Sequence record: NC_061441.1
DNA: 64,000 bases
Reading direction: 5' to 3' (one strand)
Part shown: piece by piece, positions 12,267-31,805 of the stretch
Layout: each line of letters opens with the position of its first letter
How positions within the stretch are numbered: the first letter of the stretch is position 1
The notes under the pieces: generated by a model
What the model was told of the DNA's origin: nothing
The model's input: the letters and a program-made list of their open reading frames with translations, nothing else
The model's database searches: none
Made by a program: the position numbers and the translations under genes

Positions 12267-13037
12267 ATGAGCAACGTTGATAAAACAATGCCACAAGGTC
12301 GCTGGGAATTTAACGAACCAGTTGCTGCTGTCTTCGATAACATGTTGCAAAACTCCATTCCTTCGTATGACCGTATGCGTGACCTGACCTATCGTCTTGG
12401 TCGCCAGTTCGTAACTCCAGGTACGGCCATCGTTGATTTGGGCGCATCGCTTGGTCGCGCTATCGAACCATTCTGCGCTGAGTTCGGCGAGTACCATTAT
12501 ATTCATGCTGCTGACCGCCCTGAGCCAGATCGTGAAATCGGCAATCACTACTGCTGCTACGAAGTCGCACCGGCAATGCTTGAGCGTCTTCGTCAAAACG
12601 AAGTGCTGGTCAACGCCAAAGCAAAAATCAGTAGTGATTCGCTGGTTGAAGTCGATACTTTCCGCTTCGACGAGCAGGTTGAGTGCTCCCTGATTCTGAG
12701 TGTGCTGACTCTCCAGTTCACTCCTATCGAACACCGCCAACACATTCTGGAGAAAGTGTACGACTCTCTGGAGAAAGGCGGTGCTTTCATTCTGGTTGAG
12801 AAAGTGTTGGGTGACGACAACTTCCTTGACCGTTTGCTGGTAGACACCTACTACGGCATGAAGGGCGATAACGGTTACTCGCAAGAATCTATTGCGACTA
12901 AGCGCAAAGCTCTCGAAGGCGTACTGGTGCCTGTGAAAGCTGCATGGAACGAAGAACTGCTGCGTAAAGCAGGCTTCAACCGTGTGGAGTGTTTCTACCG
13001 CGACCTGAACTTTGCTGGATGGATCGCAGTCAAATAA
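12267..13037 (+). CDS. cmoA: carboxy-S-adenosyl-L-methionine synthase (CmoA-like)
   Basis: WEFNEPVAAVFDNMLQNSIPSY, VDLGASLG, LTLQF, EK, NGYS..SIATKRKALE (Arg equivalent to E. coli CmoA R199), AGF..NF; collinear with CmoA over its full length. Confidence 0.9.
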   Translation: MSNVDKTMPQGRWEFNEPVAAVFDNMLQNSIPSYDRMRDLTYRLGRQFVTPGTAIVDLGASLGRAIEPFCAEFGEYHYIHAADRPEPDREIGNHYCCYEVAPAMLERLRQNEVLVNAKAKISSDSLVEVDTFRFDEQVECSLILSVLTLQFTPIEHRQHILEKVYDSLEKGGAFILVEKVLGDDNFLDRLLVDTYYGMKGDNGYSQESIATKRKALEGVLVPVKAAWNEELLRKAGFNRVECFYRDLNFAGWIAVK

Positions 13038-13048
13038 GGTAAAACGAA

Positions 13049-14095
13049 ATGAGCGTAAGTGGTGATATTTATAACATCCCTCAACCGTTCGCCATATATT
13101 GTGGCAACTGTGAAACTCGTGCTCAGGCAAAAGTTGCCTCAGGCACAATCGAATGGGCGTCAGAGAAAGTCTGCTGCGTTGTTGCCGACGATAACGGCCT
13201 GTTCCCTGATGTGCCTCACGTCAACATCGCAAGCGTCCATGCCACAGATGCACGTACTCTGGTAATTGGCTGTGCACCGTTCGGCGGTAAGATTGACGAG
13301 CACATGGACCGCACTATTCGCAGTGCTATCTATCGTGGTCTGAACGTTGCTGCCGCGATGCACAATCGTCTGGCAGATAATCCTGAATACGTTGCGCTGG
13401 CCGAACAGTATAACGTCAAGCTGTATGACTTCCGTCATCGTCCTGACGCGTACCCTCTCGGTACTGGTGAGAAGCGCAGAGGCATTCGTCTGCTGACTGT
13501 AGGTACCGATAGCTCTTGCGGTAAGAAGTTCACGACGCTGACGCTGCACCGCATCCTGAAAGAGATTCACGAAGACACCGTGTTCTGTTCAACTGGCCAG
13601 ACTGGTTTCCTGATCAGCAACTGTGGTATCAACAACGATACGCTGGTGGCTGATTTCCTTGCTGGCGCTGCTGAGTCTTTATCTCCCGATGGTCCTGATG
13701 ATCGTATCTATCTGATTGAAGGCCAGGGTGCTATTACTCACCCAGCGTATACTGGTGGCAGCATGAGCCTGATTGCTGGCTCGCAGCCTGACTACTTCAT
13801 CATGTGCCATGCGTGGGGACGTAAGAATCAGCTCGGTGTTAAACGCGCACCTGACCTTGCTTTTGAACTAAAGGCCAATCTGGACGCAGCGGCCATTCAC
13901 GGTCTTACTCCTAAGTATCTAGGCATCAGTATCAACTTCTCCGAGAGTGGCCTGACCATCGAAGAACAAGACGCTGAGATGTGCGCCCTGGAGGACCTGT
14001 ACGATATTCCAGTGTTCGACCCGTCGCGTGATCGTATCGTCATCAAAGAGATGGCACATCATCTCAAGACGACTGTAATATTCAGGGGCAAGTAA
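13049..14095 (+). CDS. DUF1611 family protein (DgcN-like, P-loop C-terminal domain)
   Basis: LVIGCAPFGG, AAMHNRLADNPE, GTDSSCGKK, STGQTGFLI, DFLAGAAE, IEGQGAITHPAY. Confidence 0.85.
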   Translation: MSVSGDIYNIPQPFAIYCGNCETRAQAKVASGTIEWASEKVCCVVADDNGLFPDVPHVNIASVHATDARTLVIGCAPFGGKIDEHMDRTIRSAIYRGLNVAAAMHNRLADNPEYVALAEQYNVKLYDFRHRPDAYPLGTGEKRRGIRLLTVGTDSSCGKKFTTLTLHRILKEIHEDTVFCSTGQTGFLISNCGINNDTLVADFLAGAAESLSPDGPDDRIYLIEGQGAITHPAYTGGSMSLIAGSQPDYFIMCHAWGRKNQLGVKRAPDLAFELKANLDAAAIHGLTPKYLGISINFSESGLTIEEQDAEMCALEDLYDIPVFDPSRDRIVIKEMAHHLKTTVIFRGK

Positions 14096-14096
14096 C

Positions 14097-14966
14097 ATGG
14101 CTAAACATCCTCTTCGCAAGCTGTTTGAACAGCACGTAAAGAAAGAGGTCAAAGCCAAAGAAGTGGCCGTTCTGCTTTCGAGCGGCCTCGATGGTTTGGT
14201 TAGCGCACTCGCGGCGCACGATCTCGGCATGAAGGTACATGCCTTTACTTTTCAGATGGGCGACGACCAGAGCTTCGACAGCAAACACGCTGCAATCGTA
14301 GCCCAGAAAATGGGCTGGGAGTTCACGCTCGTTAAGGTGCCAGACTCTGATAGTGCAATCGCCAAAGGCTGGAAGACGTTGCACAAGAATTTCCGCTGCA
14401 TCAAAAAGCGTGATTACGAGTGTGCGTACCCTATGGTGTACTGCTACAAAGCGATCAAAGATGCAGGCTTGAAATACGTGCTTAGTGGTCTGGTGGCTGA
14501 CGGTTACTTCCTGTATAACCGAAACACGCACATTCAGAAAGTAAGCGGCCCGCACTCTATCGCTGAAAAGTATCACGCGTACCGCACCGAATACTTCCGA
14601 CCGTGGATCAAAAGCGGTAAGAAGTCGCTCGGCGTTGACGGCTATAACCCGAGCGGTATGCTGCAACACGAATTGCTGTGTGACCACTTCGGCCTTGTTC
14701 ACGTTAACCCGTGGATGCAGCCGAAAGTATTTGATTACTTCATCAAGTACACATGGCAAGAGTTAAATATGCCTAAGCAGAAAATGCCAATAACAACGGC
14801 TTGGGCAGATCACATCGCAGTTGTTGGACATCGTCCACATCGCGGCTATCAAACAGAAGCTGGAGTGCCTGCGCACTTCGAACGCTTACTGGATAATCCT
14901 GAGATCAACTTCAACGGCCGCAAGCGCATCATGGACGTGGCCCGCGATTGGTCAACGAGGACTTAA
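14097..14966 (+). CDS. asparagine-synthetase-like ATP-dependent amide ligase, synthetase domain only (CmoY-like candidate)
   Basis: PP-loop VAVLLSSGLDG, HAFTF, DSKHAAIVAQKMG, VLSGLVADGYF; no N-terminal Ntn glutaminase domain. Confidence 0.75.
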   Translation: MAKHPLRKLFEQHVKKEVKAKEVAVLLSSGLDGLVSALAAHDLGMKVHAFTFQMGDDQSFDSKHAAIVAQKMGWEFTLVKVPDSDSAIAKGWKTLHKNFRCIKKRDYECAYPMVYCYKAIKDAGLKYVLSGLVADGYFLYNRNTHIQKVSGPHSIAEKYHAYRTEYFRPWIKSGKKSLGVDGYNPSGMLQHELLCDHFGLVHVNPWMQPKVFDYFIKYTWQELNMPKQKMPITTAWADHIAVVGHRPHRGYQTEAGVPAHFERLLDNPEINFNGRKRIMDVARDWSTRT

Positions 14967-14967
14967 T

Positions 14968-15582
14968 ATGTTTGTACACATCATTGACGGTGGTATTGGT
15001 GGGTCTTATGTTGCTCACCAGTTAATGGAAGCTGGGTTTAAATGTCGCGTTCACTCTCCGAATAACAATCGTGTTCGGGCAGTACATGCGCCATACCCTT
15101 CGCTTTCTATGGGTCACACTGAACAGGAAATTGAAAAGCATATCGGTAACGTGCTTGGTACGTTTCGCGGTCTGTTCCTGATCAGTAGCTACGTTGGTTC
15201 GTTAATTGCAAATCAGATGATCGATCAATGCGGTCAGAGTGGAAACATCATCACCTGTGACGATCTCAAGTGTGGTTCAATACCTGTTGTTGCTTCATCC
15301 ATTTCTGTAAACGTCTATAAGAAGCAAAGACAACTGGCACGTATCTCGCATCGCTTGAAACACTTCGACATTGACCACGAGTTTATTGTCGCTGATAAGG
15401 CTGTGCGTTTTGCTGCTGGTTCGGAGTATGATGAGCACGATGCTCGAAAGGAGTTTAACAACAACGCCAAATTCCTTTCAAGTCCGTCAATGATTGTTGC
15501 TGCACACAAACTCGGTGTGAAGAACAGTATGTACCACAACTATGCGGGACTGGTGCGCGAGTTTCTTGAGAAGCGCCAGTAG
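14968..15582 (+). CDS. hypothetical protein, possible remote Asp/Glu racemase fold
   Basis: ATG after GAGG RBS; IIDGGIGGSYV resembles MurI FDSGVGGxSV; catalytic Cys positions appear to be Ser; fold call is weak. Confidence 0.55.
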   Translation: MFVHIIDGGIGGSYVAHQLMEAGFKCRVHSPNNNRVRAVHAPYPSLSMGHTEQEIEKHIGNVLGTFRGLFLISSYVGSLIANQMIDQCGQSGNIITCDDLKCGSIPVVASSISVNVYKKQRQLARISHRLKHFDIDHEFIVADKAVRFAAGSEYDEHDARKEFNNNAKFLSSPSMIVAAHKLGVKNSMYHNYAGLVREFLEKRQ

Positions 15583-15600
15583 CAGTAACGCGAGGGCACG

Positions 15601-15864
15601 ATGATTAATCGCTTTCAATTGAAGAAAGTTCCGACGCTCGAAGCGTGTCAATGGAACGGGGAGAACGTCGAGGAGATGCAGAAGTTCATCGACGGTCACG
15701 GATATGTTGTTGGGCGTTATGTCCAGATTGGTGTGCTCGATGAATATCGCAAGCCGTCTATTGCTAACGTGTCTGTAGGCAACTACGCAGTTAAGCACGA
15801 AGACGGTCGGTTCGATGCGATGACAGCAAGCGAACTGATGGACAAATACGTTCTGGCGGATTGA
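15601..15864 (+). CDS. conserved phage hypothetical protein
   Basis: EACQWNGEN...GNYAVKHEDGRF pattern common in phage small proteins. Confidence 0.65.
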   Translation: MINRFQLKKVPTLEACQWNGENVEEMQKFIDGHGYVVGRYVQIGVLDEYRKPSIANVSVGNYAVKHEDGRFDAMTASELMDKYVLAD

Positions 15865-15871
15865 GGGCATA

Positions 15872-16327
15872 ATGAATCTGTTTTCTATTTTAAAGCAACA
15901 GGTAAAGAAAGCGCTGTCCACCGAAGCGAATCACGAACCAGAGATTCGTGCGTTGTTCGACTGGCGCTACTCTGTTGAGATCAAAGGCCAGATGTACATT
16001 GTAGGTAAGACTGGAGCAAACACTTGCTTCTATGTTGAGCCTGGTACTGACGAGCCGATTGCGTGTTACCCTGACGCGCTGCTGGAGAAGATTGACCAGT
16101 GGGGCGGAAGCAAGTACGTGTCGTATTCGATCTTCTTTAAACGCTTCGATAGCCCTGTCGCCGAGAACATCAAAACTCTCGAAAAGGCAATGAGCGGTAA
16201 GCCTAAGTCGTACAAGAAAGGCTACTTCATCTGTGGCGTGACGCCGAAAGGTAAGCGTGTGAAACTCTATCGCTTGCAGCAAGGTCTGTCGGGTATGCAG
16301 TGGGTAGCTGTCGAACCTAAATCGTAA
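15872..16327 (+). CDS. hypothetical protein
   Basis: ORF with GAGG RBS. Confidence 0.65.
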   Translation: MNLFSILKQQVKKALSTEANHEPEIRALFDWRYSVEIKGQMYIVGKTGANTCFYVEPGTDEPIACYPDALLEKIDQWGGSKYVSYSIFFKRFDSPVAENIKTLEKAMSGKPKSYKKGYFICGVTPKGKRVKLYRLQQGLSGMQWVAVEPKS

Positions 16328-16357
16328 CAGCACGGCCTGTCCGTGTGAGGAGCAAAT

Positions 16358-16645
16358 ATGATTGACGACATTATTATTGGTCACATCTATCAGTCATCGA
16401 ATGGTCATCCATATAAAGTGGAAGGCCGCGCCGAACACGGGCAAAACCCAGAAGACAAGTGGGTACAACTCCATAACCTGACTCAAACTCCTTTGTATGC
16501 CAAAGGCCATAAGTTCAGTATGCGAGAGTCCGTGTTCAAGGAAGTTTTCTCTGTGTATACAGAAGGAGAGTACCATGAACACAACGTTAAGGCATCATCT
16601 GAAATGCCGCCACTTCGATCCTTCATTCTACCATTGTTGGCTTAG
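16358..16645 (+). CDS. DUF1653-like small beta-barrel protein
   Basis: IGHIYQSSNGHPYKV..AEH..V....F.MRES.F pattern. Confidence 0.55.
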   Translation: MIDDIIIGHIYQSSNGHPYKVEGRAEHGQNPEDKWVQLHNLTQTPLYAKGHKFSMRESVFKEVFSVYTEGEYHEHNVKASSEMPPLRSFILPLLA

Positions 16646-17088
16646 CGATACGCAAATGACCGTGCCCTTGTTTGGCTTTGATCGAGCAATGCGTGGTCTA
16701 CAGGTCTACACACCAGATGCACCAAAGCACGATAAGAACCCGAAAGCGTGTCGTTACTTCACGCGAGCGTTCGGTGGCAAGCAGTTGGTGTGGGGATCGG
16801 AAATTAAACCTGAACGGGTCGACCGTCTTCTTAACTGAGTCTGTTTTCAAGGCATGTGCGCTGCATCGTCTTGGACTCAATGCTTGGTCCGTTCTCGGGT
16901 CTAATGTGAGTGAGCATCTGTACCACCAGCTTCGACTTCTTGGTCTACGTTTCGTCTGTCTTGGTGACAACGATAAAGCAGGACTGGAGTTTAGTCAGAC
17001 GTTCGGACTAGGCGCGGTCAGTGCGGATCTTGATGAGATGACTGATGAGCAGTTGCTTGATTTAACTTTACCCTTCGTAAGGAAATAG
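16575..17088 (+). pseudogene. small Toprim (primase-like) gene split by a frameshift near 16800
   Basis: Strong RBS and ATG at 16575; frame 1 ends at TGA 16838; Toprim motifs FLTES and LGDNDKAG lie in the +1 frame, which has no good start of its own. Confidence 0.65.
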
Positions 17089-17090
17089 AA

Positions 17091-17519
17091 ATGTCACGCG
17101 AAGTTATCGTCCGTATCTTAGGCCCTGTTGGTGCTGGCAAGTCTGCTGTGTATGCAACTCTGGTCAAAGCGCTGACTCAAATCGGTGTTGACGTCAAACA
17201 TGCCGATGAGAAAGCGTGGAAGTCTCTGGAGAACGCAGGCGAAGTTGCGCTGTCTACCGAAACGCTGAACGAACTCACACCTGTTGTGACGTTTGAAGAA
17301 GCTGGTATTCGCACTGATGCGTCCGCAAGCCAGAACTCTATCATGCAGTTCTTTGCTTATGCGCATCTTCCGCCGCACCTGCAAGCTGTGAGCAAACCGT
17401 TCGCTCTGCTGGCTCAAGAGATGGACCAGAACCTTCCACAAGGTCCTGAGAAGTCTGCCGGTCTGCGCAAGCTGCTTGAAGCGAAAGACTGCATGGTTCG
17501 CCAGCTCGTTTCCAAATGA
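17091..17519 (+). CDS. two-part protein: N-terminal Walker A-like segment plus conserved phage helical-hairpin domain
   Basis: GPVGAGKS; C-terminal QFFAYAHLPPHLQAVSKPF...GPEKSAGLRKLLEAKDC. Confidence 0.7.
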   Translation: MSREVIVRILGPVGAGKSAVYATLVKALTQIGVDVKHADEKAWKSLENAGEVALSTETLNELTPVVTFEEAGIRTDASASQNSIMQFFAYAHLPPHLQAVSKPFALLAQEMDQNLPQGPEKSAGLRKLLEAKDCMVRQLVSK

Positions 17520-17839
17520 GTCTCGATCTCTTAGTGCCGCCTATCGGTCTGGAGCGCATTGAGTATCGTAACTACAACTACGACAATGTTAGCCTCAACA
17601 TTTTGAACATCATTAGCGTAGTGCCGAGCGCATTCAAGTCATATCCTGATAATGAAGGCACTCCGTCTATTGCATTCGAAATACGCGGGCGAGAGAAGCC
17701 TGTCCACTGGATTATCCCTAAAGGGAAGTACGGTGCGAACGCTACGGCGTTGCGGGACAGACTACTCCATCGTTTGCAGACAGGTGGCTATTCGCATTTG
17801 GTGGCTGCTGACGAACTGATCGCTGACTTACAGAAATAA
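17516..17839 (+). CDS. hypothetical protein
   Basis: ATGA-coupled ORF ending before a terminator. Confidence 0.6.
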   Translation: MSLDLLVPPIGLERIEYRNYNYDNVSLNILNIISVVPSAFKSYPDNEGTPSIAFEIRGREKPVHWIIPKGKYGANATALRDRLLHRLQTGGYSHLVAADELIADLQK

Positions 17840-17842
17840 CCC

Positions 17843-17870
17843 AAGGGTGGCCATTAGGCTGCCCTTTTCT
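17843..17870 (+). terminator. rho-independent terminator
   Basis: AAGGGTGGCC-ATTA-GGCTGCCCTT followed by TTCT. Confidence 0.75.
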
Positions 17871-17993
17871 GATCTTAGACAACTAAAACAAGCCCATAAG
17901 GACAGAGTAGAACCGTGCGTAAAGCGTATAAAACCATGTGTAGGCAGCGTAGAAACACCACCTTTTTCTTGAGCAGTGGGAAGCGCTTAAAAA

Positions 17994-18002
17994 CTGTAAA
18001 TA
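17994..18002 (+). promoter_or_regulatory. CTGTAAATA candidate promoter motif
   Basis: Intergenic, downstream of a terminator, just before the RBS of the Dam-like gene. Confidence 0.55.
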
Positions 18003-18020
18003 CTGATAAAGGAGAGAAAA

Positions 18021-18863
18021 ATGACAGTAATCAGCCCAATCCGATATCAGGGCAATAAGCGAAGCCTTATCCCGATTATTCTTGAGCACACGCCTTCTGT
18101 GCAGGACTGCCCTCGCATGGTGGACGTGTTTGGTGGTAGTGCTACTGTTTGCGCGAACATGCCGCAGAAGTTTCGCGTCTACAATGAACTGAGTCCTCAG
18201 GTGTACGATATCGTTAAGATGTTAGTCGAACAGGACCCGAAGAAAACTCTTGGTCAGGTCAAGCGACTGGTCAAACATTGGTGCCTGACTAACAGCAACG
18301 AAGCGAACTACGATGCGTTTCGGACCGTCGTTCAGAGGAAGCGTACGGCTATACTGCATTACGTTGCACATCGCCACGCACACTCGAACATGTTGCGCTT
18401 CAATCAACAAGGTGTGTACAACGTAGGCTTTGGTGATCGTGGCCTGATTGGAAAGTTCGATGAGCTGGAGCACGAACTCACTACATTCCACAAGCACATG
18501 CAGGGCGTTCACCTGACGAACATGAAGTACGGCAAACTGCTTGGTCGCTTAGGCCACCAGCTAGACTGTAACACGTTCTGCTACTTCGACCCTCCGTATT
18601 TAGCGAGCGGTGCGATGCAGTACGGTAAGTGGACCGAGCAGAATGAACGCAACCTGCTTACGACTCTGGAGCAGTTGAATCGTCGCGGCGTTCCCTGGAT
18701 GTTGAGCAACGTTATCGAGCACCGTGAGTTCTCCAACGACCTGTTAAAGCGTTGGCTAAAGAAACATGCGACAACCGTGCTCTATCCAAACAAAAGCTAT
18801 GCGATGAACAATGGCCAGAGCGGCTCGCATAGCACGATTGAAATTCTGGCAATGAACTATTGA
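18021..18863 (+). CDS. Dam-like (D12 class) N6-adenine DNA methyltransferase
   Basis: SPIRYQGNK, DVFGGSATV, YFDPPY. Confidence 0.88.
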   Translation: MTVISPIRYQGNKRSLIPIILEHTPSVQDCPRMVDVFGGSATVCANMPQKFRVYNELSPQVYDIVKMLVEQDPKKTLGQVKRLVKHWCLTNSNEANYDAFRTVVQRKRTAILHYVAHRHAHSNMLRFNQQGVYNVGFGDRGLIGKFDELEHELTTFHKHMQGVHLTNMKYGKLLGRLGHQLDCNTFCYFDPPYLASGAMQYGKWTEQNERNLLTTLEQLNRRGVPWMLSNVIEHREFSNDLLKRWLKKHATTVLYPNKSYAMNNGQSGSHSTIEILAMNY

Positions 18864-18870
18864 GGCTGCT

Positions 18871-19176
18871 ATGACTCTGCGTACAAACCAAAAACTTATC
18901 TTCATCTTAAAGGCTCTAACGCGCAAGTTAGAGGAGGTCAACGCTCTCGCCTGGTCAATATCGAAAGATCCCAAAGACACTTGCGGAGCTATTGATATGT
19001 CGGCTATATCTGACTACTCAGATGAAGGTCTGATCAAAGAAATTGAAATGCGCGCCAATCAAATCGAAGAACGTAAGCGATACATTGCGAGTCTTCATGG
19101 TGGCGCTGATGGCCACTGCCGTGCTGCGAATAATCAGGCTGATGCAATCTATCAACGTTATTGTGGGAAAAGATAA
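18871..19176 (+). CDS. hypothetical protein
   Basis: ORF with GAGG RBS. Confidence 0.55.
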   Translation: MTLRTNQKLIFILKALTRKLEEVNALAWSISKDPKDTCGAIDMSAISDYSDEGLIKEIEMRANQIEERKRYIASLHGGADGHCRAANNQADAIYQRYCGKR

Positions 19177-19880
19177 TGGAACAAGAAATGAAAGACATGC
19201 CGCTGCATATCATCAACGGCTTCCAGCTTAACGAGCACACGACGAAACTGTTTGCATACGCACTTGACCTTGTTCGTCTCGGTGCTAACATCGACGAATC
19301 GTTTTGGATAGATCGCATTGTGGCTGATGACTACAAAGCAGAAATAACCGACCTGCTGTCTATTACAGGTCCGCGCATTTCTCGTCGTCACTTTGACCTG
19401 TTCGAAACTCTGGAGACGTGTCGCCGTAACGCTCACATCATTCTTGAAGCACTGATTGATGGTATGAGCACAATCTGCACCGAACTCGAAGAAGCGTTCA
19501 TGGCAGAAGATGGCGGTACGCCACTGATTCGTCGTGCCAAACAGAACATGTTCCGTAACGAAACGATTCAGTACCTGTTGCGTCCTGCGGAAGAAAAGGA
19601 CATTCATAACTGTCCTACTTATCGTAAGATTGCTGCTGGTCTGTATGATGCAGAACCTGTGCTGTTAGCGATTCGCGGCAATTCGTCAGAAACCAAATAC
19701 GTGTGGAACGGTGAGTGGCGAGCGCTGCTTGCCGTGTCCGAAGCTGACCGTCAGGTACACTATCGTCGTTGGTACTACAACCACGCGCTCACTATTCATC
19801 GTCTGCGGGATATGATCACCTGTCACCTGTACACTGTGTACGCTGACCATTTCAGTCGAGGTAAAAATGCCGGGCATTAA
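19176..19880 (+). CDS. hypothetical protein
   Basis: TAATG-coupled ORF. Confidence 0.65.
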   Translation: MEQEMKDMPLHIINGFQLNEHTTKLFAYALDLVRLGANIDESFWIDRIVADDYKAEITDLLSITGPRISRRHFDLFETLETCRRNAHIILEALIDGMSTICTELEEAFMAEDGGTPLIRRAKQNMFRNETIQYLLRPAEEKDIHNCPTYRKIAAGLYDAEPVLLAIRGNSSETKYVWNGEWRALLAVSEADRQVHYRRWYYNHALTIHRLRDMITCHLYTVYADHFSRGKNAGH

Positions 19881-20343: not shown

Positions 20344-20731
20344 CGCCAGTGATGCAGAAGCACGGGCGTACTATCAGAAACAACATGAACGCGCCGAAGC
20401 CACCATGCGAGAAATCTGGGCGTTACGTGGTTGGACGATTCGTTGGGAGTGGCACAACGGCATCTGCGATGATTGTGAGTTCCTGTTCGACGAAACAGGC
20501 AAGCAGTTGTGTCCGTATCACGATGCCATTCCGCAAGAACGTGACGTATCGTACAATCTTGAGAAGCATCGCCTCAATGTGACGTACACCAAGAAATCTG
20601 TAAAATTGACTAACAAGCAAGATCCAAATCCAGTTGAAGGTAAAGCTGACACGTTACGTCAGGCATATCTCAACTGGCTGTTGGCTCTTGAGAAACAAAA
20701 AGCTGAGGAGAAAACGTGCGCTGCAATTTAA
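20321..20731 (+). CDS. hypothetical protein
   Basis: GGGAG RBS, operon packing. Confidence 0.6.
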   Translation: MYLPLGDNASDAEARAYYQKQHERAEATMREIWALRGWTIRWEWHNGICDDCEFLFDETGKQLCPYHDAIPQERDVSYNLEKHRLNVTYTKKSVKLTNKQDPNPVEGKADTLRQAYLNWLLALEKQKAEEKTCAAI

Positions 20732-22638: not shown

Positions 22639-22648
22639 GGGGAATTTT

Positions 22649-23188: not shown

Positions 23189-23191
23189 TCG

Positions 23192-24428: not shown

Positions 24429-24747
24429 GTACGTGATGTTCGTTCGCACTCGCACCAAAGAGCGCGACGACGGTGTTCACATGCCAGTCATCTTCCCGAC
24501 TCATATCATGCACTCCGATATGGGTGAAGCTATGATCGGCTACGCTATTCAGAACGGCATGATCGAAAACAAATACTATCAGCGCATGACTGCGGTTAGT
24601 GCTGGCTTCATCGATCTGAATGACCTGCGTTGTTTCGGTGAGTCTGAATCTCTGGAACTCAAGTCTCGTGAGCAGGACAGCGAGATCATCCGTGAGTACA
24701 TGAAGACTCAAGGCAAAGGCGCTCCTGTTCCAGAGGTGGAAGAATGA
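24400..24747 (+). CDS. hypothetical protein
   Basis: ORF in operon; VSAGFI motif. Confidence 0.6.
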   Translation: MMGQSALVFKYVMFVRTRTKERDDGVHMPVIFPTHIMHSDMGEAMIGYAIQNGMIENKYYQRMTAVSAGFIDLNDLRCFGESESLELKSREQDSEIIREYMKTQGKGAPVPEVEE

Positions 24748-25232
24748 GCATAGCAGGAAAAGTCGATAGCGTTAAAAACCAACGCGAGTCTGAACGTAAG
24801 GCCAAAGAAGAAACTTTCCGCGCTGCCTGTCAGGCTCTCATTCCTAAAGTCGCGTCTGATATGGACGGCTTGCTTCTGCACTTCGTTAGCGCGAACGTTA
24901 ATAGTGACCGCATTGTACTCGGTACGCCAAAGTACACTATCTGCGACTACAGATTCAAGCTGACCATCACCGTTGACTTCCACGAAAACCGCGACACGCA
25001 GTTCACTGTCGAGCTGGCGCCTGATGGTCCGTTCACGCTGATCAAAGATCGTGTGCGTCAACGCCCGTGGTTCCTGCGCGACATTACGCTCATGCCATAC
25101 GAAGACGCTCTCTCCGAAATGATGTACCATGCTGTGGAGAAATCATTTGCAGGTAATGAGTGGCGCGACCGTTACGGTCCGAATCTCGGCTCAAGCGATG
25201 TAATATTCTCGCACCTGTATCTGAGGTCCTGA
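24744..25232 (+). CDS. hypothetical protein
   Basis: ATGA-coupled ORF. Confidence 0.65.
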   Translation: MSIAGKVDSVKNQRESERKAKEETFRAACQALIPKVASDMDGLLLHFVSANVNSDRIVLGTPKYTICDYRFKLTITVDFHENRDTQFTVELAPDGPFTLIKDRVRQRPWFLRDITLMPYEDALSEMMYHAVEKSFAGNEWRDRYGPNLGSSDVIFSHLYLRS

Positions 25233-25612
25233 TGAAAGAAGTCCTGTTATCAATCTGGAACAGCCCGTTCTGGGACAAACCTGTTAGCGCATTCGTTGTG
25301 CCTGCGTTTGTCATCACCTGGTTTATATGGACAGAGTATCGTGAGCGCCGTGAATTGCGTTTGTCTCGTGATGTGTTTGCAACGGGCTGGGCACCTGTGA
25401 AAGGGACAATGTACCGTCACCGCTATCTGCCTTGGCGTACCTGTCGTTTGTGCTATACTGTAAATAGTCCTAACGACAAGTTCATCCCTTCTGTCTTCAT
25501 CGAAATCATAGGCGGCTCATACAAAGAATTGACCGCTCATAGTTTCTGTACATCTTACAAAGAGATTGAAAATGCCAACTCCAGTGATTCTTCTCAAGCA
25601 GCAAACTCGTGA
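25232..25612 (+). CDS. putative membrane protein
   Basis: TGATG coupling; hydrophobic segment VSAFVVPAFVITWFIW. Confidence 0.55.
   Translation: MKEVLLSIWNSPFWDKPVSAFVVPAFVITWFIWTEYRERRELRLSRDVFATGWAPVKGTMYRHRYLPWRTCRLCYTVNSPNDKFIPSVFIEIIGGSYKELTAHSFCTSYKEIENANSSDSSQAANS
25458..25466 (+). promoter_or_regulatory. CTGTAAATA candidate promoter motif
   Basis: About 100 nt upstream of the operon containing thyA. Confidence 0.4.
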
Positions 25613-25916
25613 CCTGCTGGTAAAGATGTTCGGCCAGAACAAGCCATTCATCGTCGTGCGCCGTGACGCTACCGTGGAGAACGAAAAGCGTTTCGGTGAT
25701 CGCGTTTACTTCTCTAATGGCGTTAACACCGTCACTGTGCCAAACATTCAAGGGCTTGACCTGGGTGATAAGCTCTACATTGCAGAAGACGGCGATGTGT
25801 ATGAGTGGCATCCTCACTTCGAGCGTCCTTACGAAGCAGTATCGAACAACCAGACAGAAGCTCTGGCGTTTGGTCTGCATCCCATTGTCTTCCACACCGA
25901 CACACGGAACAGCTAA
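25566..25916 (+). CDS. hypothetical protein
   Basis: ORF coupled to thyA (TAATG). Confidence 0.55.
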   Translation: MKMPTPVILLKQQTRDLLVKMFGQNKPFIVVRRDATVENEKRFGDRVYFSNGVNTVTVPNIQGLDLGDKLYIAEDGDVYEWHPHFERPYEAVSNNQTEALAFGLHPIVFHTDTRNS

Positions 25917-27013
25917 TGTCACAACCACTTGATTTACGAAACCCGAACCACTACGAACTGTACTCTCTCCATAGCGTGGACGAGCAGTATATCAACCTGT
26001 GCGATGCAATCATTGCTACTGGTACGCAAGAGTCCGATGCTGGTCGCACCGACGATACGTGGACGACTCTGATTGGCGTTGGTTTCCAGTTGCAGAACAC
26101 GCACATTGCTTTCCCTGCACTGCTGTCCGCACGTAAGAACTGGAGCGCAGCCGTCGATGAGATGTGCTGGATGGCTCGCGGTGAAACGAACATCAACACT
26201 CTCGGCTCTAAGATCTGGGACGAGTGGGCAGATGAAAGCGGTGAGTGCGGTCCAATCTATGGCGAGATGTGGCGCCGTTGGCCTGACATTAAAGCGTTCT
26301 TCGACTACACGCAGCCTATGGCGTCTTGCCCTACTGCCGATGTTATTCGTGTACGTGACGAAATCCTGCGTATGCGTCAGGACGGCTACATCGAAACGCA
26401 ACTGACTGACGGTCGCATCCTGTTTGAAGGTGAGATTGACCAGTTCGCTAACGCTCTGTATCACATTGAAAACCGTTCGCGTTCTCGCCGCATTCGTGTG
26501 CAGGGTTTCAACCCAAGCTATGTGAACATGCAGGGTCTTCCTCCGTGTCACACTGAGTTTGAGTTCAACGTAACGAAGTCCACCAAGTACGAACAGGCGC
26601 AGGCCGATGTCCGCGGTCAGACGGTAGCGCAGGACAGTCTGCATATCACTGTCACCATGCGCAGCAACGACTGCCTGCTTGGGCGTCCTTTCAACATCAT
26701 CGGTTACAGTGCGATGCACCAACTGATTGCGAAGTGGGCCGGCCTGAACGTTGGCGGCTTTACGCTGAATACGACGAACACGCACCTGTACGATCATCAC
26801 CGTGAAGCATACGCTAAACAGCGTGAGCAGTGGATGACGTTGCGTGAACGTATGCAGACAACTGGCGAGCCTGTGAAATATCCTGTGCTCGAAATCTCCG
26901 ATGATGTTATAGGTCTGACAGCCAAAGAACTGCTGGACAACGTTAACATAGACTGGTTCGAGCTGGTGGACTACAGCCCGCTGCCAGCAGTAAAAGGACG
27001 TGTGACCAAATGA
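25916..27013 (+). CDS. thyA: thymidylate synthase
   Basis: KIWDEWADE.GE.GPIYG..WR, LPPCH, MRSND...PFN, HLYD.H. Confidence 0.93.
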   Translation: MSQPLDLRNPNHYELYSLHSVDEQYINLCDAIIATGTQESDAGRTDDTWTTLIGVGFQLQNTHIAFPALLSARKNWSAAVDEMCWMARGETNINTLGSKIWDEWADESGECGPIYGEMWRRWPDIKAFFDYTQPMASCPTADVIRVRDEILRMRQDGYIETQLTDGRILFEGEIDQFANALYHIENRSRSRRIRVQGFNPSYVNMQGLPPCHTEFEFNVTKSTKYEQAQADVRGQTVAQDSLHITVTMRSNDCLLGRPFNIIGYSAMHQLIAKWAGLNVGGFTLNTTNTHLYDHHREAYAKQREQWMTLRERMQTTGEPVKYPVLEISDDVIGLTAKELLDNVNIDWFELVDYSPLPAVKGRVTK

Positions 27014-27657
27014 AAAATTTCATGCTGATCCAACGTATCAGTTCCTACCTGTACTTAGGCTTCGCAGAGAACATCCCTGACATTCCTCGTCGCGGTGTTG
27101 AGCAGTTTGAAGTCATCATCCCAGACGGGCGTGATGGTGACAATGAGCCGATTCTTCGAATGAAGGCGCGTTGTATCTATCACCTGCCACACAACTGTTT
27201 CCTGATCAGTGCTGTTCCAGGCACCGAGTGCGAAGAATATCCTGCCTTGATGAAGTCGCACTGTGCGCACAACATGGAACTGTTCCAGCGTTCGGAGCAT
27301 GGCCGTGAGCAGATTGCTGTCAAGCAGATTCTGAATGAGCTGCATGACGCAGAAGTGCAGCATCCTGATTGGCCAGAGGAATGTATTCACGCTGCATCAA
27401 TCGTTACCGAAGAAGCAGGTGAGTTGTTGCGTGATTGTGCAACCTTCGAAGAAAACGGTGATGACCGCCTGATTCTTAACATGCTGGGTGAAGCCACTCA
27501 GGTAGGGGCAATGGCCGTTCGCTTCATGAAGAATCTGCCGTTCAGCCAAAAGCGTACTATCCCCAATAAAGCGCTGCGCTCAATCCTTGACTCTGATATG
27601 ACGCCAGAGCAACAACTGATTGAAGTGCGCCGCCTGATGAATGACGGAGTTCGTTAA
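27010..27657 (+). CDS. protein with C-terminal MazG-like NTP pyrophosphohydrolase domain
   Basis: IVTEEAGELLRD...GEATQVGAMAVRF. Confidence 0.6.
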   Translation: MKNFMLIQRISSYLYLGFAENIPDIPRRGVEQFEVIIPDGRDGDNEPILRMKARCIYHLPHNCFLISAVPGTECEEYPALMKSHCAHNMELFQRSEHGREQIAVKQILNELHDAEVQHPDWPEECIHAASIVTEEAGELLRDCATFEENGDDRLILNMLGEATQVGAMAVRFMKNLPFSQKRTIPNKALRSILDSDMTPEQQLIEVRRLMNDGVR

Positions 27658-28547
27658 TGCGTTTACTTAGTTATGGTGCCTGTGGCGGTGAACCCTTTCG
27701 CCGTCTGATTGTAGAAGACAACGGCCTGCTTGAAATCGGTGTGCATCCAGAAATCAAAGCATTCGGTTGCGTCTTCACAAACGTTAACGTTGGTCGTCGC
27801 ATTGATGGCACTGCTGAACTCGATCTGCCTGATGCGAAAGACTGGTCTATCGAAATGGCTGACTACTTCCTGTCGCCAGAGTACAAGCAGTGGGTAGGCG
27901 GTCATACACCACGTATCGAAACGATGCTGGATGCGCACGTCATCAAAGGCAAGCTGCCGATGCTGGTGCAGGACTTCGATGCGTTCTATGCTGACCTGCA
28001 ACAAAAGATCAACGCACTCAATCTGCCTGACATTGTGTTTGAACATAACAGGATTAAGCAGACGAACCTGAACCAACAGTTCGATGTGTGGATGCTGTAC
28101 AAGTACAACCTGATGCTTGACGGCAAGATCTCTGTTACTCGTTCGAATCTCGGCGAGCTGGTCTTCCAAGAAGACTTCATTTCGGCGAAAGGTACAACGT
28201 GGTGGCTGCGTGAGCACAACAAACAACTAATGGCGTTGGCGGCAAAGCACGACATGCTGGCGGCATTCATTACGTTCGGTACGTCCCATCGCAATGAGCG
28301 TGAGTTCTTCTACTCGTTTATCACGCACGAAGGTGATACGTCACATCGACCTGTTGATCCGGCGGAGTTCATGCACCTGTCTGTTCATGGTCAGTTCCCA
28401 GAGCTGGTCATCACCGACGAAGGTGAAGGGTATCGTTTGTCTGTGAACTACGGGCAATACTTCCCCAAAGCGTATCTCGATCTCCAGGCGGCGACCAACA
28501 TCACTATCGGCAGCAACTACGCGCTTAACCTCTTGCGCTTTATCTGA
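27657..28547 (+). CDS. hypothetical protein
   Basis: 296 aa TAATG-coupled ORF. Confidence 0.7.
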   Translation: MRLLSYGACGGEPFRRLIVEDNGLLEIGVHPEIKAFGCVFTNVNVGRRIDGTAELDLPDAKDWSIEMADYFLSPEYKQWVGGHTPRIETMLDAHVIKGKLPMLVQDFDAFYADLQQKINALNLPDIVFEHNRIKQTNLNQQFDVWMLYKYNLMLDGKISVTRSNLGELVFQEDFISAKGTTWWLREHNKQLMALAAKHDMLAAFITFGTSHRNEREFFYSFITHEGDTSHRPVDPAEFMHLSVHGQFPELVITDEGEGYRLSVNYGQYFPKAYLDLQAATNITIGSNYALNLLRFI

Positions 28548-28553
28548 CGGTGC

Positions 28554-28596
28554 CGAGTCTCCCTCAGTAATTTAACCTTCTACAAAGGGAGACTCG
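28554..28596 (+). promoter_or_regulatory. 11-bp inverted repeat sequestering the RBS of the 28599 gene, with TAATTTAACC in the loop
   Basis: CGAGTCTCCCT (28554-28564) and AGGGAGACTCG (28586-28596); ATG at 28599. Confidence 0.65.
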
Positions 28597-28598
28597 CC

Positions 28599-28934
28599 AT
28601 GCAATACGATAAGACGAAAGACTATCAGCCGTTCAAATACCTGGGTGCGCCTAAGCTGCCTAACGTGGGCTTCATCGCCAGCACTGTAACACTCGTCGAA
28701 AATGACGTGAACATCGGTGAAGACGAATGCGAGTTTGTATTTACGGTAGAGCAGATGAATTCGCTAGACCGAGGAACGATGACCTTCCGCGCGAAAGATG
28801 CAGGTGGAGGCATCAGTATTAAGAAATGCTCAGTCTCTGGATTGAAAATGGTAATTAAGCTGGAACGACGCGTAGTGCAGTTCGGCAAAGTTCAAGTCGA
28901 GTGGGCTACGACCAGCCGTAAATATCTTTATTAA
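28599..28934 (+). CDS. hypothetical beta-rich protein, possibly virion-associated
   Basis: AGGGAG RBS; late-type regulatory element upstream. Confidence 0.65.
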   Translation: MQYDKTKDYQPFKYLGAPKLPNVGFIASTVTLVENDVNIGEDECEFVFTVEQMNSLDRGTMTFRAKDAGGGISIKKCSVSGLKMVIKLERRVVQFGKVQVEWATTSRKYLY

Positions 28935-28975
28935 TCTGTAAAGACAGAGAAAGAGCAACCACAAGAGAAACGATA

Positions 28976-29674
28976 ATGGCAAAAATTGCTAAAACAAAGG
29001 AAGGGAAAAAGAAAAGCGCGATGAAGTTTGACTTGAAAACGCTCAAGACTTCACAACTGAAAGGCGCTGACTACAACCCTCGTTTCATTACAGACAGCCG
29101 CCTGAAAGCACTCGAAAGTTCTTTGGGTAGCTTCGGCGATCTGTCTGGCATCGTCTTCAACAACAGTGTCAAAAGCGGCGTATTGATCTCTGGTCACCAG
29201 CGTCTGAAATCCATCGACGGATGGAAGACTCGCATTGAGATTCAGAAAGCCGCCGACCAACACGGTACTGTAGCTCTGGGTTATATCCACGCTACGCACC
29301 CGAAGAAAGCCGAGAAGGTCATCAGCATCCCGTTGCGTATCGTTAACTGGACTGATAAGAAAGCTGAGTACGCTGCGAACATCGCGGCGAACGCCCACGG
29401 TGGTGAGTTCGATAACAAGAAACTCGCCAAGCTGGTGGAGAAGCTGGACTTGACCACCATCAAGCCTCAGTTGCTGGGTCTTGACCCACTTGAGATTCGC
29501 GGCCTTCAACAAAAGCTGAAAGGTCAGGCTGCGGTTGTAGCTCAAGAGCGTGTCGGTAAAACTACAGGCCAGATGAACGGTAGTAGCGGTGCGTTCAAAG
29601 AGTATGGTACGGACGAAGTAGGTGAGAGTCTGAACTGCACCTGCCCGCGCTGTGGATTTAAGTTCGAGGGATAA
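28976..29674 (+). CDS. ParB/sulfiredoxin-like N-terminal domain protein with C-terminal zinc ribbon
   Basis: LKGADYNPR, ISGHQRLK, ANAHGGEFD, CPRCG. Confidence 0.85.
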   Translation: MAKIAKTKEGKKKSAMKFDLKTLKTSQLKGADYNPRFITDSRLKALESSLGSFGDLSGIVFNNSVKSGVLISGHQRLKSIDGWKTRIEIQKAADQHGTVALGYIHATHPKKAEKVISIPLRIVNWTDKKAEYAANIAANAHGGEFDNKKLAKLVEKLDLTTIKPQLLGLDPLEIRGLQQKLKGQAAVVAQERVGKTTGQMNGSSGAFKEYGTDEVGESLNCTCPRCGFKFEG

Positions 29675-29675
29675 T

Positions 29676-31805
29676 ATGATCATCAAGCCGCCTACTATGA
29701 AGGAAATCAACAAGCTGGATAAACCCTGGCGTGGTATGAGTTTCTTCGCAGGTTGCGGTGGATCTTCTACCGGTCACAAGATGGCCGGTATCAACATCCT
29801 GTTGAGTAACGAGTTCGTGGATAGTGCCCGCGAGTCTTACGAAGCAAACCATCCGACTACTAAAGTGCTGCCGCATGATATTCGTCGTCTGGACCCAAGC
29901 AAGCTCATGCGTTATTGCGGCTTGGCGAAAGGCGAACTGGATTTACTTGACGGCAGTCCTCCGTGCTTCACCGAAGACACCATCATTCATACAGCAGACG
30001 GCATGAAGTTCATCTCGGACATGAATGTCGGCGATCAAGCAATGACCTCTGTTGGTCGTTACTTCCCTGTGTACGATACTATGGTTCGTCCGTACGTCGG
30101 CACGATGCACAAAATCGAAACTCTGCTGGGCGCAAACAACGCTACACCAGAGCATCCGTTCTTTGTCAGACGCAGCATTCCTACTGGCGGTTACACTGAC
30201 CCGTTCTGGTGTGATGCGAAAGACGTTCAGGAAGGTGATCTGTTAGGTAGCCCACGCACTACGCCTGACATGGGACTCGACGTGTATCAGTCGCAACTCG
30301 ATCAGCTGCCGAAGCAGATTGCAGAGTGGAGCACATTCCCTGAGTTCTGGTGGATGGTTGGACACTGGTGTGATCGCGGTTCGATTGAAACCGTGAGTGG
30401 TGTTGAAGTCGTTAGCTTTGAATCTCACTCAAGCCTCGAAAATGCAATGATTGAGCAGGCGTTTGACGCGCTGAAAATCAGCAGCCTGAACCGTATCGAC
30501 ACGATGACAGCACAACGCAAAACGTTCCGTATCGTTATGGACGCAGAGCTGGTGCAGTTCTTACGTCGATTCGTATCTCAGGGTAACAACAAGTTCTCTC
30601 GTCGTCTGCCTGCGATTGTCTTCCACCTGACAGTCGAGTTGAAGCAACAATTCATTCTCGGTTGTGCTGGTCATGACTATGTGACTGGTATGGGTACCGG
30701 CTTGGCGATCACCTCAGATAGCCGTCGCTTCCTGATTGAGTTGAACTACCTGTGCTGTTCTGCATTCAACAGACCGCTGTTCGATGGTCTGACTTGGGGC
30801 GACGTTTACTTCGGCAGCCCGATGACTCCGCGTGATCGTAACAGTGCTAAGCCTCTCATTGGCTTCCTGTTCCTGCAGGACGAGCACAACTTCTTCCACG
30901 AGTTCGATGACGCTGACCCGCATTTGTGGGTAGAAGTGATTGAGAACCTCGCGTATCAGGCAACCTGTGACGTGTATAACTTCTCCGTTGAGACGGACGA
31001 GACATACGTTGCAAACAGCATGGTCGTTCACAACTGCAAAGGCTTCTCTACTGCTGGTGTGAAGGAAGAAGGCTGGGGCAAGGAAGTTAAATACAGCGAC
31101 AACAAGTATCAGCAGGTAGATGACCTGTTCGATCAGTATTGTCGTATGCTGGAAGGCATGAAGCCGAAGGTGTTCACTGCGGAAAACGTGAGCGGCCTTG
31201 TGAAGGGCGCATCGAAAGGTTACTTCCTTGAAATCATGAAGGAGTTCGACCGAATCGGTTATTACGTCCGGGCACCGATGCTTAATGCCGCATGGCTGGG
31301 TGTGCCGCAATCGCGTGAGCGTATAATCTTCATGGGTGTACGCAAAGACGTTGCACACGCACTTGGTTACAAGACCGCTGCGACCGCTGTGCCGAATGTT
31401 GTTCCGTGTGACAGCATGGCGTTCCTTGCCGATGCTCTGCCGCACATCCTGCGCTACAAGTCCACGAAGAAAGATATCATCACCTATCTTCCTGCGATGA
31501 ACGGACCGATGCCTACGATTACTGCTGCCGATGCGATTGCATATGAGACTGCGCGTTTCTCGTCTGCGGGATTCGTCGAGGACAACAAAGGTCATCGCCG
31601 TAAACTGACTATCGACGAACTCAAAGTGATATCGGGTTTGCCCTCAGACTACAAACTGAAAGGCAAATTCGAAGAACAGTGGGAACGTCTTGGTCGTATC
31701 TGTGTGCCTGCAATGACACACGCTGCGGCTAAAGCGCTCATCGAACACGTCCTGATTCCTTACGCGAAGAAACGTAAGAAGAAGCCAGGCGATATCTTTA
31801 AGTAA
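29676..31805 (+). CDS. C5-cytosine DNA methyltransferase homolog, predicted carboxymethyltransferase (CmoX-like), intein-containing; about 352 aa after splicing
   Basis: Motif I FFAGCGG, IV GSPP-C-KGFS after splicing, VI ENVSG, VIII QSRER; motif X reads LGRICVP instead of GN(A/S)V. Confidence 0.88.
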   Translation: MIIKPPTMKEINKLDKPWRGMSFFAGCGGSSTGHKMAGINILLSNEFVDSARESYEANHPTTKVLPHDIRRLDPSKLMRYCGLAKGELDLLDGSPPCFTEDTIIHTADGMKFISDMNVGDQAMTSVGRYFPVYDTMVRPYVGTMHKIETLLGANNATPEHPFFVRRSIPTGGYTDPFWCDAKDVQEGDLLGSPRTTPDMGLDVYQSQLDQLPKQIAEWSTFPEFWWMVGHWCDRGSIETVSGVEVVSFESHSSLENAMIEQAFDALKISSLNRIDTMTAQRKTFRIVMDAELVQFLRRFVSQGNNKFSRRLPAIVFHLTVELKQQFILGCAGHDYVTGMGTGLAITSDSRRFLIELNYLCCSAFNRPLFDGLTWGDVYFGSPMTPRDRNSAKPLIGFLFLQDEHNFFHEFDDADPHLWVEVIENLAYQATCDVYNFSVETDETYVANSMVVHNCKGFSTAGVKEEGWGKEVKYSDNKYQQVDDLFDQYCRMLEGMKPKVFTAENVSGLVKGASKGYFLEIMKEFDRIGYYVRAPMLNAAWLGVPQSRERIIFMGVRKDVAHALGYKTAATAVPNVVPCDSMAFLADALPHILRYKSTKKDIITYLPAMNGPMPTITAADAIAYETARFSSAGFVEDNKGHRRKLTIDELKVISGLPSDYKLKGKFEEQWERLGRICVPAMTHAAAKALIEHVLIPYAKKRKKKPGDIFK
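29964..31034 (+). mobile_element. intein (357 aa) with degenerate LAGLIDADG region, inserted directly before the catalytic Cys
   Basis: Starts C-FTEDT, block B ATPEHPF, block F VYNFSVETDETYVAN, ends VHN followed by +1 Cys. Confidence 0.92.

Follow-up and report, generated by a model that had tools for sequence, protein, structure and literature searches.

A candidate CmoA/CmoX/CmoY-type DNA hypermodification pathway with DgcN-family and racemase-fold accessory genes in an Erwinia jumbo phage

The closest described relative of the genes considered here is the system of Synechococcus phage S-B43, in which CmoA makes carboxy-S-adenosylmethionine (Cx-SAM) and CmoX, a C5-cytosine methyltransferase (MTase), makes 5-carboxymethylcytosine (5cxmC) (Yang et al., Nat Commun, December 2025, PMC12783734). 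SpCmoX uses Cx-SAM alone, by way of Arg350 in place of the Asn of motif X, and when that Arg is changed to Asn the enzyme uses neither Cx-SAM nor S-adenosylmethionine (SAM). The AsnB-like SpCmoY then attaches glycine, giving 5-glycyl-carboxymethylcytosine, one adduct in one cyanophage. The same authors catalogued 5,615 candidate CmoX proteins by the presence of SPPC and Arg350, on contigs that carry CmoA (4,257), a ligase (2,251) or a ParBc neighbour (1,660), and they consider that some ligase clusters probably take other amines (all PMC12783734). DUF1611, racemases, inteins, chorismate mutase and Erwinia go unmentioned in that paper and its supplements, and a literature search found no further paper on CmoX or Cx-SAM in phages. 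I describe here two loci, in the first 64 kb of the genome of Erwinia jumbo phage pEa_SNUABM_16/18, that appear to encode a variant of this system, in which the core genes are accompanied by a DUF1611/DgcN-family gene and a gene for a protein with a predicted racemase fold.

There are other phages that decorate pyrimidines at C5. Alpha-glutamylthymine in SP10 and 5-acetylaminomethyl-deoxyuridine in PaMx11 both arise post-replicatively, by the addition of an amino acid or an acetylated amine, and in both the tailoring genes lie in variable cassettes. Those systems start, however, from 5-hydroxymethyl-deoxyuridine with a kinase or pyrophosphate leaving group, not from carboxymethyl cytosine.

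The stretch analysed, called the window below, comprises bases 1-64000 of the 266-kb genome of an Alexandravirus that infects Erwinia amylovora, the agent of fire-blight. Its first modification locus, 3.3 kb in length, is 100% identical, at the same coordinates, in Erwinia phages pEa_SNUABM_16 and _18. The second lies 15 kb away. The genes and the one intein that matter most are these (aa, amino acids; the sources of each assignment in brackets):

12267..13037, + strand: gp016, predicted CmoA-like carboxy-SAM synthase, 256 aa (CmoA models, 4GEK, PHROG 4752)
13049..14095, + strand: gp017, DUF1611/DgcN-family protein, 348 aa (PF17396, PF07755, NF041892, 7XRJ)
14097..14966, + strand: gp018, predicted CmoY-type amide ligase, AsnB synthetase domain alone, 289 aa (PF00733, SpCmoY)
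14968..15582, + strand: gp019, protein with predicted glutamate-racemase fold, 204 aa (AlphaFold2 model, Foldseek)
28976..29674, + strand: gp046, ParB-like DNA-binding protein, 232 aa (PHROG 620)
29676..31805, + strand: gp047, predicted CmoX-type precursor, 709 aa, with exteins of 96 and 256 aa (PF00145, 8YF3)
29964..31034, + strand: intein in gp047, 357 aa (Hint_2, Intein_splicing, TIGR01443)

RefSeq labels gp016 a 'tRNA methyltransferase' and gp046 a 'ParB-like partition protein', and leaves gp017 to gp019 and gp047 as hypothetical. A sequence-only reading of the same DNA had described these genes and proposed that the phage writes 5cxmC on its DNA and turns it into an amide. Family searches and alignments found every gene it described where it had placed them, and gp016 to gp019 do form one operon of four genes, with 1-11 nucleotides (nt) between neighbours.

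I propose that the two loci encode a post-replicative hypermodification of the CmoA/CmoX/CmoY type, with gp017 and gp019 as accessories and a final base unlike the glycine amide, a reading that I hold to be quite probable. In the first step gp016 would turn SAM and host prephenate into Cx-SAM. In the second, gp047 would splice out its intein, bringing the +1 Cys of the C-extein into the SPPC active site, and the mature enzyme would carboxymethylate C5 of cytosine in phage DNA to 5cxmC, with gp046 probably helping it to engage DNA. In the third, gp018 would adenylate the carboxylate of 5cxmC and link to it, as an amide, an amine that is probably an alpha-amino acid. The fourth step would belong to gp017 and gp019 as accessory enzymes of the variant; both families act on D- or L-amino acids. 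Homology to characterised enzymes and the co-occurrence of the genes point to the first three steps; what gp017 and gp019 contribute, and which amine is used, I infer beyond that. The modified DNA presumably shields the phage from restriction and other DNA-targeting defences.

Set beside S-B43, the system shares CmoA, a CmoX with SPPC and the carboxylate-contacting Arg, a ligase without a glutaminase domain and a ParB-like neighbour. It differs in being split over two loci, in having an intein at the catalytic Cys and in the added DgcN-family and MurI-fold genes; and S-B43 is a Synechococcus phage, whereas this is a 266-kb jumbo phage of an enterobacterial plant pathogen. The match to CmoA, CmoX and CmoY, diagnostic residues included, supports the core that the earlier reading had foreseen, from Cx-SAM through 5cxmC to an amide. 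That core was published in December 2025 and hence is not new. What appears to be undescribed is the presence of DgcN-type and racemase-fold accessories and the variation of the cassette among sibling phages.

To begin with the first enzyme, gp016 matches two CmoA models, TIGR00740 (E 1e-42, score 146.6, under the equivalog cut-off of 193.3) and NF011995 (score 111.8, under the cut-off of 285). It matches PHROG 4752 at E 9e-82, is 30% identical to active SpCmoA, and aligns with E. coli CmoA (4GEK) at E 1e-30 over residues 11-256, with DLGASLG opposite DLGCSLG. The catalytic Arg that had been claimed for it is there: Arg199, which pairs with the carboxylate of Cx-SAM, is aligned in the 4GEK comparison and conserved in gp016. 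On these resemblances gp016 is predicted to convert SAM and prephenate to Cx-SAM. In the column of Arg199, SpCmoA of S-B43 (L002:5192-5887) has Glu and the homolog on contig L016 has Lys, and SpCmoA has an Arg three residues after that column. Since SpCmoA is active with Glu at this position, a conserved catalytic Arg is not a universal test for a phage CmoA.

Then there is the evidence from co-occurrence, a check that the earlier reading had itself suggested. I defined a clade of 57 related phage records by the flanking gene gp015 (48 Erwinia, 8 Dickeya and 1 Yersinia). CmoA and the CmoX extein (at least 60% identity) are both present in 51 of the 57 and both absent from the other six, which are Dickeya phages of the JA type (JA11/13/29/33). 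JA11 shares the surrounding genes in synteny (gp013-015, primase, Dam, deoxycytidine monophosphate (dCMP) deaminase, ThyA) and has neither gp016-022 nor gp044-051. A published comparison gives the same four genes as common to AD1 and Y3 and absent from JA11, and restricts DUF1611 to AD1 (Day et al. 2018, PMC6143709, Table 5). The split over two loci is conserved within the clade. Outside it the genes can be found together: on the unrelated phage contig L016 one operon holds a C5-MTase, a chorismate mutase, a CmoA-like gene, DUF1611 and a ligase, and on the unrelated contigs L018 and L033 one operon holds CmoX, DUF1611, a ligase and CmoA.

The chorismate mutase of L016 (CM_2, 4622-5089) has a counterpart of sorts on contig L014, where a gene of the 3-deoxy-D-arabino-heptulosonate 7-phosphate (DAHP) synthase family (10943-11806) lies 3' of the ligase. 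CmoA needs prephenate as its co-substrate, and prephenate is what chorismate mutase produces. Genes of this kind probably raise the prephenate supply for CmoA, and their position next to the modules lends independent support to Cx-SAM synthesis.

gp047 is a C5-MTase (PF00145, E 2e-38), and its best match in the PDB is SpCmoX itself (8YF3, E 8e-54), followed by HaeIII at 1.5e-17. Aligned with its relatives and SpCmoX, it shows FAGCGG (FxGxGG), GSPPC after splicing, ENV and QSRER (QxRxR). In motif X it has, as had been claimed for it, Arg at the position of SpCmoX Arg350 (Asn304 of HhaI), reading ERLGRICVP against ERVGRMVPP. Its start is most likely ATG 29676, not GTG 29652, judging by alignment of homologs and by the RefSeq annotation. 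The likeness to SpCmoX suggests that gp047 would use Cx-SAM to make 5cxmC in DNA.

One could suppose instead that these are unrelated add-ons, gp016 boosting host-type synthesis of uridine 5-oxyacetic acid (cmo5U) in tRNA and gp047 being an ordinary SAM-dependent MTase that makes 5-methylcytosine against restriction. The RefSeq label of gp016 fits this, so does the distance of 15 kb between the loci, and the host has a CmoB of its own (general knowledge of Enterobacterales). It is too much, however, to ask of unrelated genes that CmoA and the MTase should occur together so strictly over the 57 related genomes and stand in a single operon in other phages. Motif X has Arg, not Asn, and SpCmoX with the same Arg takes Cx-SAM alone. 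Moreover, the window has neither a CmoB homolog, as the earlier reading had noted (E. coli CmoB query, best tblastn E = 2), nor a tRNA gene. I regard the idea of add-ons as highly improbable.

The intein occupies aa 97-453 of gp047, and its insertion point coincides with the catalytic Cys of motif IV (GSPP|C...VVHN|CKGFS). It begins with Cys1 (CFTEDT), has the TxxH block ATPEHPF and ends with VVHN before Cys+1. The intein-free homolog on L016 reads GSPPCKGYSSAG (GSPPCKGYS), the same as the predicted splice junction of gp047 (GSPP|CKGFSTAG), and it follows from this match that motif IV takes its catalytic nucleophile from the +1 Cys of the C-extein. gp047 must therefore be inactive until it has been spliced, which matters for heterologous expression. 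Every clade member examined carries the intein. At the same position contig L018 carries a homolog of it whose LAGLIDADG-like motifs have survived better.

Whether the intein still splices bears on a further possibility, that gp047 is inactive and the pathway a relic. Two observations could be read in this way: the first LAGLIDADG-like motif looks degenerate next to that of the L018 intein, and the Pfam Hint and intein matches fall under their gathering scores. Against these, TIGR01443 is above its cut-off (22.3 vs 15.6) and the splicing residues are all there, Cys1, the TxxH block and HN with Cys+1. The intein-bearing open reading frame is intact, with no stop codon, in all five clade members checked (the window, Y3, SNUABM_5, SNUABM_1 and fHe-Yen9-02). 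The exteins are 72-99% identical over about 50 jumbo-phage records (matches of at least 60% identity), so they have evidently been under purifying selection. I give the notion of a relic hardly any credence.

gp046 had been described as ParB-like, and the description stands in PHROG though not in Pfam. It matches PHROG 620, 'ParB-like partition protein', at E 1e-32 and PHROG 723 at E 5e-4, but Pfam ParBc (PF02195) was not detected in it, nor at E 5 in five homologs, and its profile found no ParB match in the PDB. It also matches PHROG 498, the N-terminal part of phage DNA MTases, at E 9e-21. ParBc genes are reported as neighbours of CmoX (PMC12783734).

The third enzyme, gp018, matches PF00733 (E 3e-13, residues 6-138) and positions 235-388 alone of the 517 of TIGR01536, which is the C-terminal synthetase part. 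As had been noted, there is no glutaminase domain. It is 33% identical to the glycine ligase SpCmoY (E 3e-50), and in a ligase tree its clade, ligase A, is sister to SpCmoY. The earlier reading had the AsnB-like ligase amidate the product. The type, an amide ligase, agrees with this; the amine hardly does, for SpCmoY attaches glycine, not ammonia.

It is with gp017 that the system parts from what has been published. The protein matches both domains of DUF1611 (DUF1611_N, PF17396, E 2e-18; DUF1611_C, PF07755, E 2e-45) and the model of DgcN, D-glutamate N-acetyltransferase (NF041892, E 3e-83, score 279.6, under the cut-off of 480). From end to end it can be aligned with 7XRJ (E 2.5e-52), it retains the P-loop, and its identity with a cellular protein of the DgcN type is about 40%. 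Like DgcN (7XRJ), then, it has both domains, the P-loop, full-length alignment and the company of racemase-type genes; it differs in its score below the cut-off, in its separate phage clade and in its partner. The partner of DgcN is an enolase-type racemase, and one adjoins DUF1611 in all three non-phage loci sampled. No such neighbour (MR_MLE, DgcA-like) was seen beside gp017, whose partner is an AsnB-type ligase, together with pyridoxal-phosphate-type or MurI-fold proteins. From its family gp017 is predicted to be an acyl-CoA-dependent N-acyltransferase acting on a D-configured amino group.

The link between DUF1611 and the ligase is close. Homologs of gp017 occur in 34 of 50,697 phage records, and these are the same 34 that have ligase A (at least 80% identity); in 21 records with other ligases DUF1611 is absent. 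In a collection of 5.8 billion proteins every one of the nearer homologs (42-65% identity) is encoded on a phage contig, immediately 5' of an AsnB-type ligase, often with an alanine-racemase-like gene between the two and a 400-420-aa protein upstream. The comparison with DUF1611 elsewhere comes from a metagenome scan, which gave 80 further loci (35-43% identity), 44 of them at least 8 kb long. A CmoY-type ligase adjoins DUF1611 in 18 of 18 phage-context loci against none of these 44, where CmoA and CmoX are likewise missing from the neighbourhood, as is any CmoY-like ligase. The ten phage-context DUF1611 proteins group in a tree as one branch with support 100, apart from 76 others. A scan of IMG/VR with a single DUF1611 sequence recovered close relatives alone. 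The ligases linked to DUF1611 split into two clades of the ligase tree, which makes DUF1611 a module in its own right and not the appendage of one ligase lineage.

All this bears on the simplest alternative, that only the published chemistry operates, gp018 making 5-glycyl-carboxymethylcytosine while gp017 and gp019 act on host D-glutamate or peptidoglycan, for instance by draining D-glutamate as N-acetyl-D-glutamate. The ligase A clade is, after all, sister to SpCmoY, a cellular DgcN-type protein is about 40% identical to gp017, and gp019, which also occurs in phages that lack DUF1611, shares its fold with MurI, maker of cell-wall D-glutamate. But in unrelated phage contigs DUF1611 is located inside the modification operon, separating CmoA from the ligase in L016 and CmoX from the ligase in L018 and L033. 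The adjacency to the ligase (18 of 18 phage loci vs 0 of 44 others) and the distinct clade of the phage DUF1611 proteins tell against it as well, and gp019 apparently has no racemase thiols. I consider the published chemistry alone unlikely. The context leads me to infer that gp017 and gp019 belong to the DNA-modification pathway. It also supports the earlier suggestion of a more elaborate base, since unrelated phage contigs preserve the pairing of DUF1611 with CmoY-type ligases.

The fourth gene of the operon had been called racemase-like. gp019 has no match in Pfam, NCBIfam or PHROG, and none of 16 members of its family matches PF01177 even at E 10. The family has 17 members in a large protein collection, and a HMMER scan of 1.84 billion representatives returned five members, all of the family itself. 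The AlphaFold model from the single sequence was unusable, with a predicted local distance difference test (pLDDT) of 35; with a 16-sequence alignment it reached pLDDT 90.6 and a predicted template-modelling score of 0.87. The top 14 PDB matches of that model in Foldseek are all glutamate racemases (MurI; E 4e-5 to 4e-3, template-modelling score (TM) 0.52-0.64), and the next is an aspartate racemase homolog. At the N-terminus VHIIDGGIGGSYV aligns with MurI VLVFDSGVGGLSV, in an hhalign comparison of the family with a single MurI that aligned that motif alone, so that the MurI motif FDSGVGG / D-x-G-x-G-G is present. With E. coli MurI as query, the homologs that came back for a racemase profile were all enterobacterial and at least 85% identical.

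The fold, then, can be upheld; the catalytic residues are another matter. In a profile alignment Cys92 of MurI, the first catalytic thiol, falls on Ser74, invariant in the gp019 family. The position of the second would be Ser171/172 in LSSPS, as mapped by the order of secondary-structure elements alone. The two-thiol machinery of a racemase is thus apparently absent. With the MurI / Asp-Glu racemase superfamily gp019 shares a predicted two-domain fold (TM 0.52-0.64) and the N-terminal D-x-G-x-G-G; it differs in being about 10% identical, in having no PF01177 match, in its Ser for the first Cys and in its length, 204 aa against about 265 aa. The gene follows the ligase in most clade members irrespective of ligase type. 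In SNUABM_2 gp019 is 75% identical while the ligase is only 24% identical.

Among phages otherwise very similar, the slot between cmoA and the conserved genes downstream varies. The cassettes found there are:

window type: DUF1611, ligase A, gp019
SNUABM_7 type: 420-aa protein, DUF1611, ligase A
SNUABM_1 type: 420-aa protein, DUF1611, alanine-racemase-like, ligase A, gp019
SNUABM_2 type: ligase B, gp019
Y3 and Yoloswag: ligase, 2-oxoglutarate-Fe(II) oxygenase, with or without gp019
SNUABM_5 and fHe-Yen9-02: other forms

Across these types CmoA stays 68-99% identical and the CmoX exteins 72-99%. The 2-oxoglutarate-Fe(II) oxygenase takes the place of DUF1611 in Y3 (L004:3595-4233) and Yoloswag (L022:3105-3746), which suggests a variant with an oxidised adduct. 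A conserved protein of 400-420 aa is encoded 5' of DUF1611 at L006:2016-3278, L019:2328-3590, L014:6782-7978 and L017:6770-7990; it has no family match, with glycosyltransferase hints at chance level (E ~0.8) and one faint Pfam match.

Much in these cassettes has to do with D-amino acids. gp017 belongs to the DgcN family, an alanine-racemase-like gene occurs in sibling and metagenomic cassettes, gp019 has a MurI fold, and cellular DUF1611 pairs with an enolase-type racemase. I therefore add to the proposal, going by the chemistry of these families, that the appended group most likely is, or becomes, a D-configured amino-acid moiety and that gp017 would then N-acylate (acetylate) a free D-alpha-amino group on it or on a precursor. 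A side chain of this kind, D-configured and acetylated, would differ from that of 5-glycyl-carboxymethylcytosine in S-B43, and the final base is probably something other than the published glycine amide. In its fullest form the idea is that the base is 5cxmC with an N-acylated side chain derived from a D-amino acid and that the variable slot yields several adducts among near-identical siblings, a diversity-generating cassette driven by host defence. This fullest form is tentative, and I find it rather doubtful.

Several points weigh against the proposal as a whole. One is chemical: acetylation of the DgcN type is impossible on an amino acid whose sole amine forms the amide. There would have to be another amine to acetylate, or the steps would have to come in another order. 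The donor could be a diamino acid (lysine, ornithine or diaminopimelate), or gp017 could act on the free precursor, or it could act within amide formation. Then, gp016 and gp017 both score under the NCBIfam equivalog cut-offs, and splicing of the gp047 intein is a prediction. gp019 lacks the first catalytic thiol in the alignment and apparently the second, and may have no racemase activity; it also turns up in siblings that have no DUF1611, and the SNUABM_7-type cassette does without it. DUF1611 goes with two ligase clades, so it is not bound to one ligase specificity. The literature search, finally, brought up no biochemical or mass-spectrometric report on the phage or its relatives.

If the side chain is indeed derived from a D-amino acid, this would be the first DNA base to carry one. 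The reading gives the phage subfamily of DUF1611/DgcN a concrete and testable role in DNA modification, to which it links D-amino-acid enzymology. About 50 culturable, sequenced jumbo-phage records of Erwinia, Dickeya and Yersinia share CmoA and CmoX and differ in the cassette, a natural swap series for new adducts. These phages are candidates for the control of fire-blight, and hypermodification of DNA bears on host range, on how sensitive the DNA is to restriction and on its sequencing.

The question of regulation takes in three further features of the window:

12229..12234, + strand: TAATTT promoter-like motif, 33 nt 5' of cmoA, conserved in 6/8 relatives
28551..28599, + strand: 19-nt imperfect inverted repeat around TAATTT (28568-28573), ending at the start codon of gp045
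28599..28934, + strand: gp045, 111 aa, head of the second operon, membership uncertain (synteny)

The earlier reading had noted TAATTT before both operons and took it as a hint of co-regulation. The motif is present at 12229 and 28568, but the second copy fronts gp045 and not the ParB-like gene directly. gp045 is syntenic in Y3, SNUABM_5, SNUABM_1 and fHe-Yen9-02; it has no family match in Pfam or PHROG, and no homolog of it was found in the syntenic region of JA11, nor one of ParB or CmoX. In the window TAATTT is under-represented, with 11 copies against 21 expected, and eight of the 11 lie in intergenic spacers about 20-35 nt 5' of start codons, before unrelated genes and often just after a hairpin:

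5371, 12229, 28568, 36574: + strand
46061, 49208, 55359, 63964: - strand

Of 8 relatives, 6 keep the motif 5' of cmoA while its flanks diverge, and all 5 relatives compared at gp045 keep it in front of their homolog. The best reading makes it an element of a general phage promoter. As a specific signal of co-regulation it has to be given up, for it fronts at least eight unrelated transcription units on both strands.

The inverted repeat around the gp045 copy, 19 nt and 84% complementary, also encloses the ribosome-binding site of gp045, and no counterpart was found 5' of cmoA. In the spacer between gp045 and gp046 there is a palindromic CTGTAAAGACAG (28936-28947), variants of which are conserved in relatives (CTGTAAATACAG, CTGTAAATCTAG); a similar CTGAAAAACAG lies 5' of cmoA. 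The palindrome may serve as an operator or as a further element of a promoter. Scans for sigma-70 promoters and terminators gave chance-level results at both loci.

Some other genes of the window deserve mention. gp042 (25916-27013) is of the thymidylate-synthase family, 365 aa long, of which about 100 form an insertion absent from ThyA. It retains, in PFNI, the Asn that specifies deoxyuridine monophosphate (dUMP), and so it is not a dCMP hydroxymethylase; its product may be dTMP or 5-hydroxymethyl-dUMP. Replacement of cytosine before replication, which needs such a hydroxymethylase, was considered and rejected on the strength of this dUMP-type Asn, and the same residue gives no reason to think that C5 of cytosine is taken beforehand. 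gp026 (18021-18863) is a D12-class (Dam-like) N6-adenine DNA methyltransferase, and the DNA of the phage is probably also modified with N6-methyladenine.

The large terminase subunit (2540-5368) is unusually long, at 942 aa, and its aa 226-405 give a weak match to Intein_splicing (E 5e-5, under the gathering score); the gene probably holds a second intein of the window. Terminase inteins are mentioned for related jumbo phages (PMC7412058). Two genes that RefSeq leaves as hypothetical can be named: gp001 (85-1506) is a DnaB-like helicase, and gp011 (8939-9967) is a 5'-3' (flap) exonuclease.

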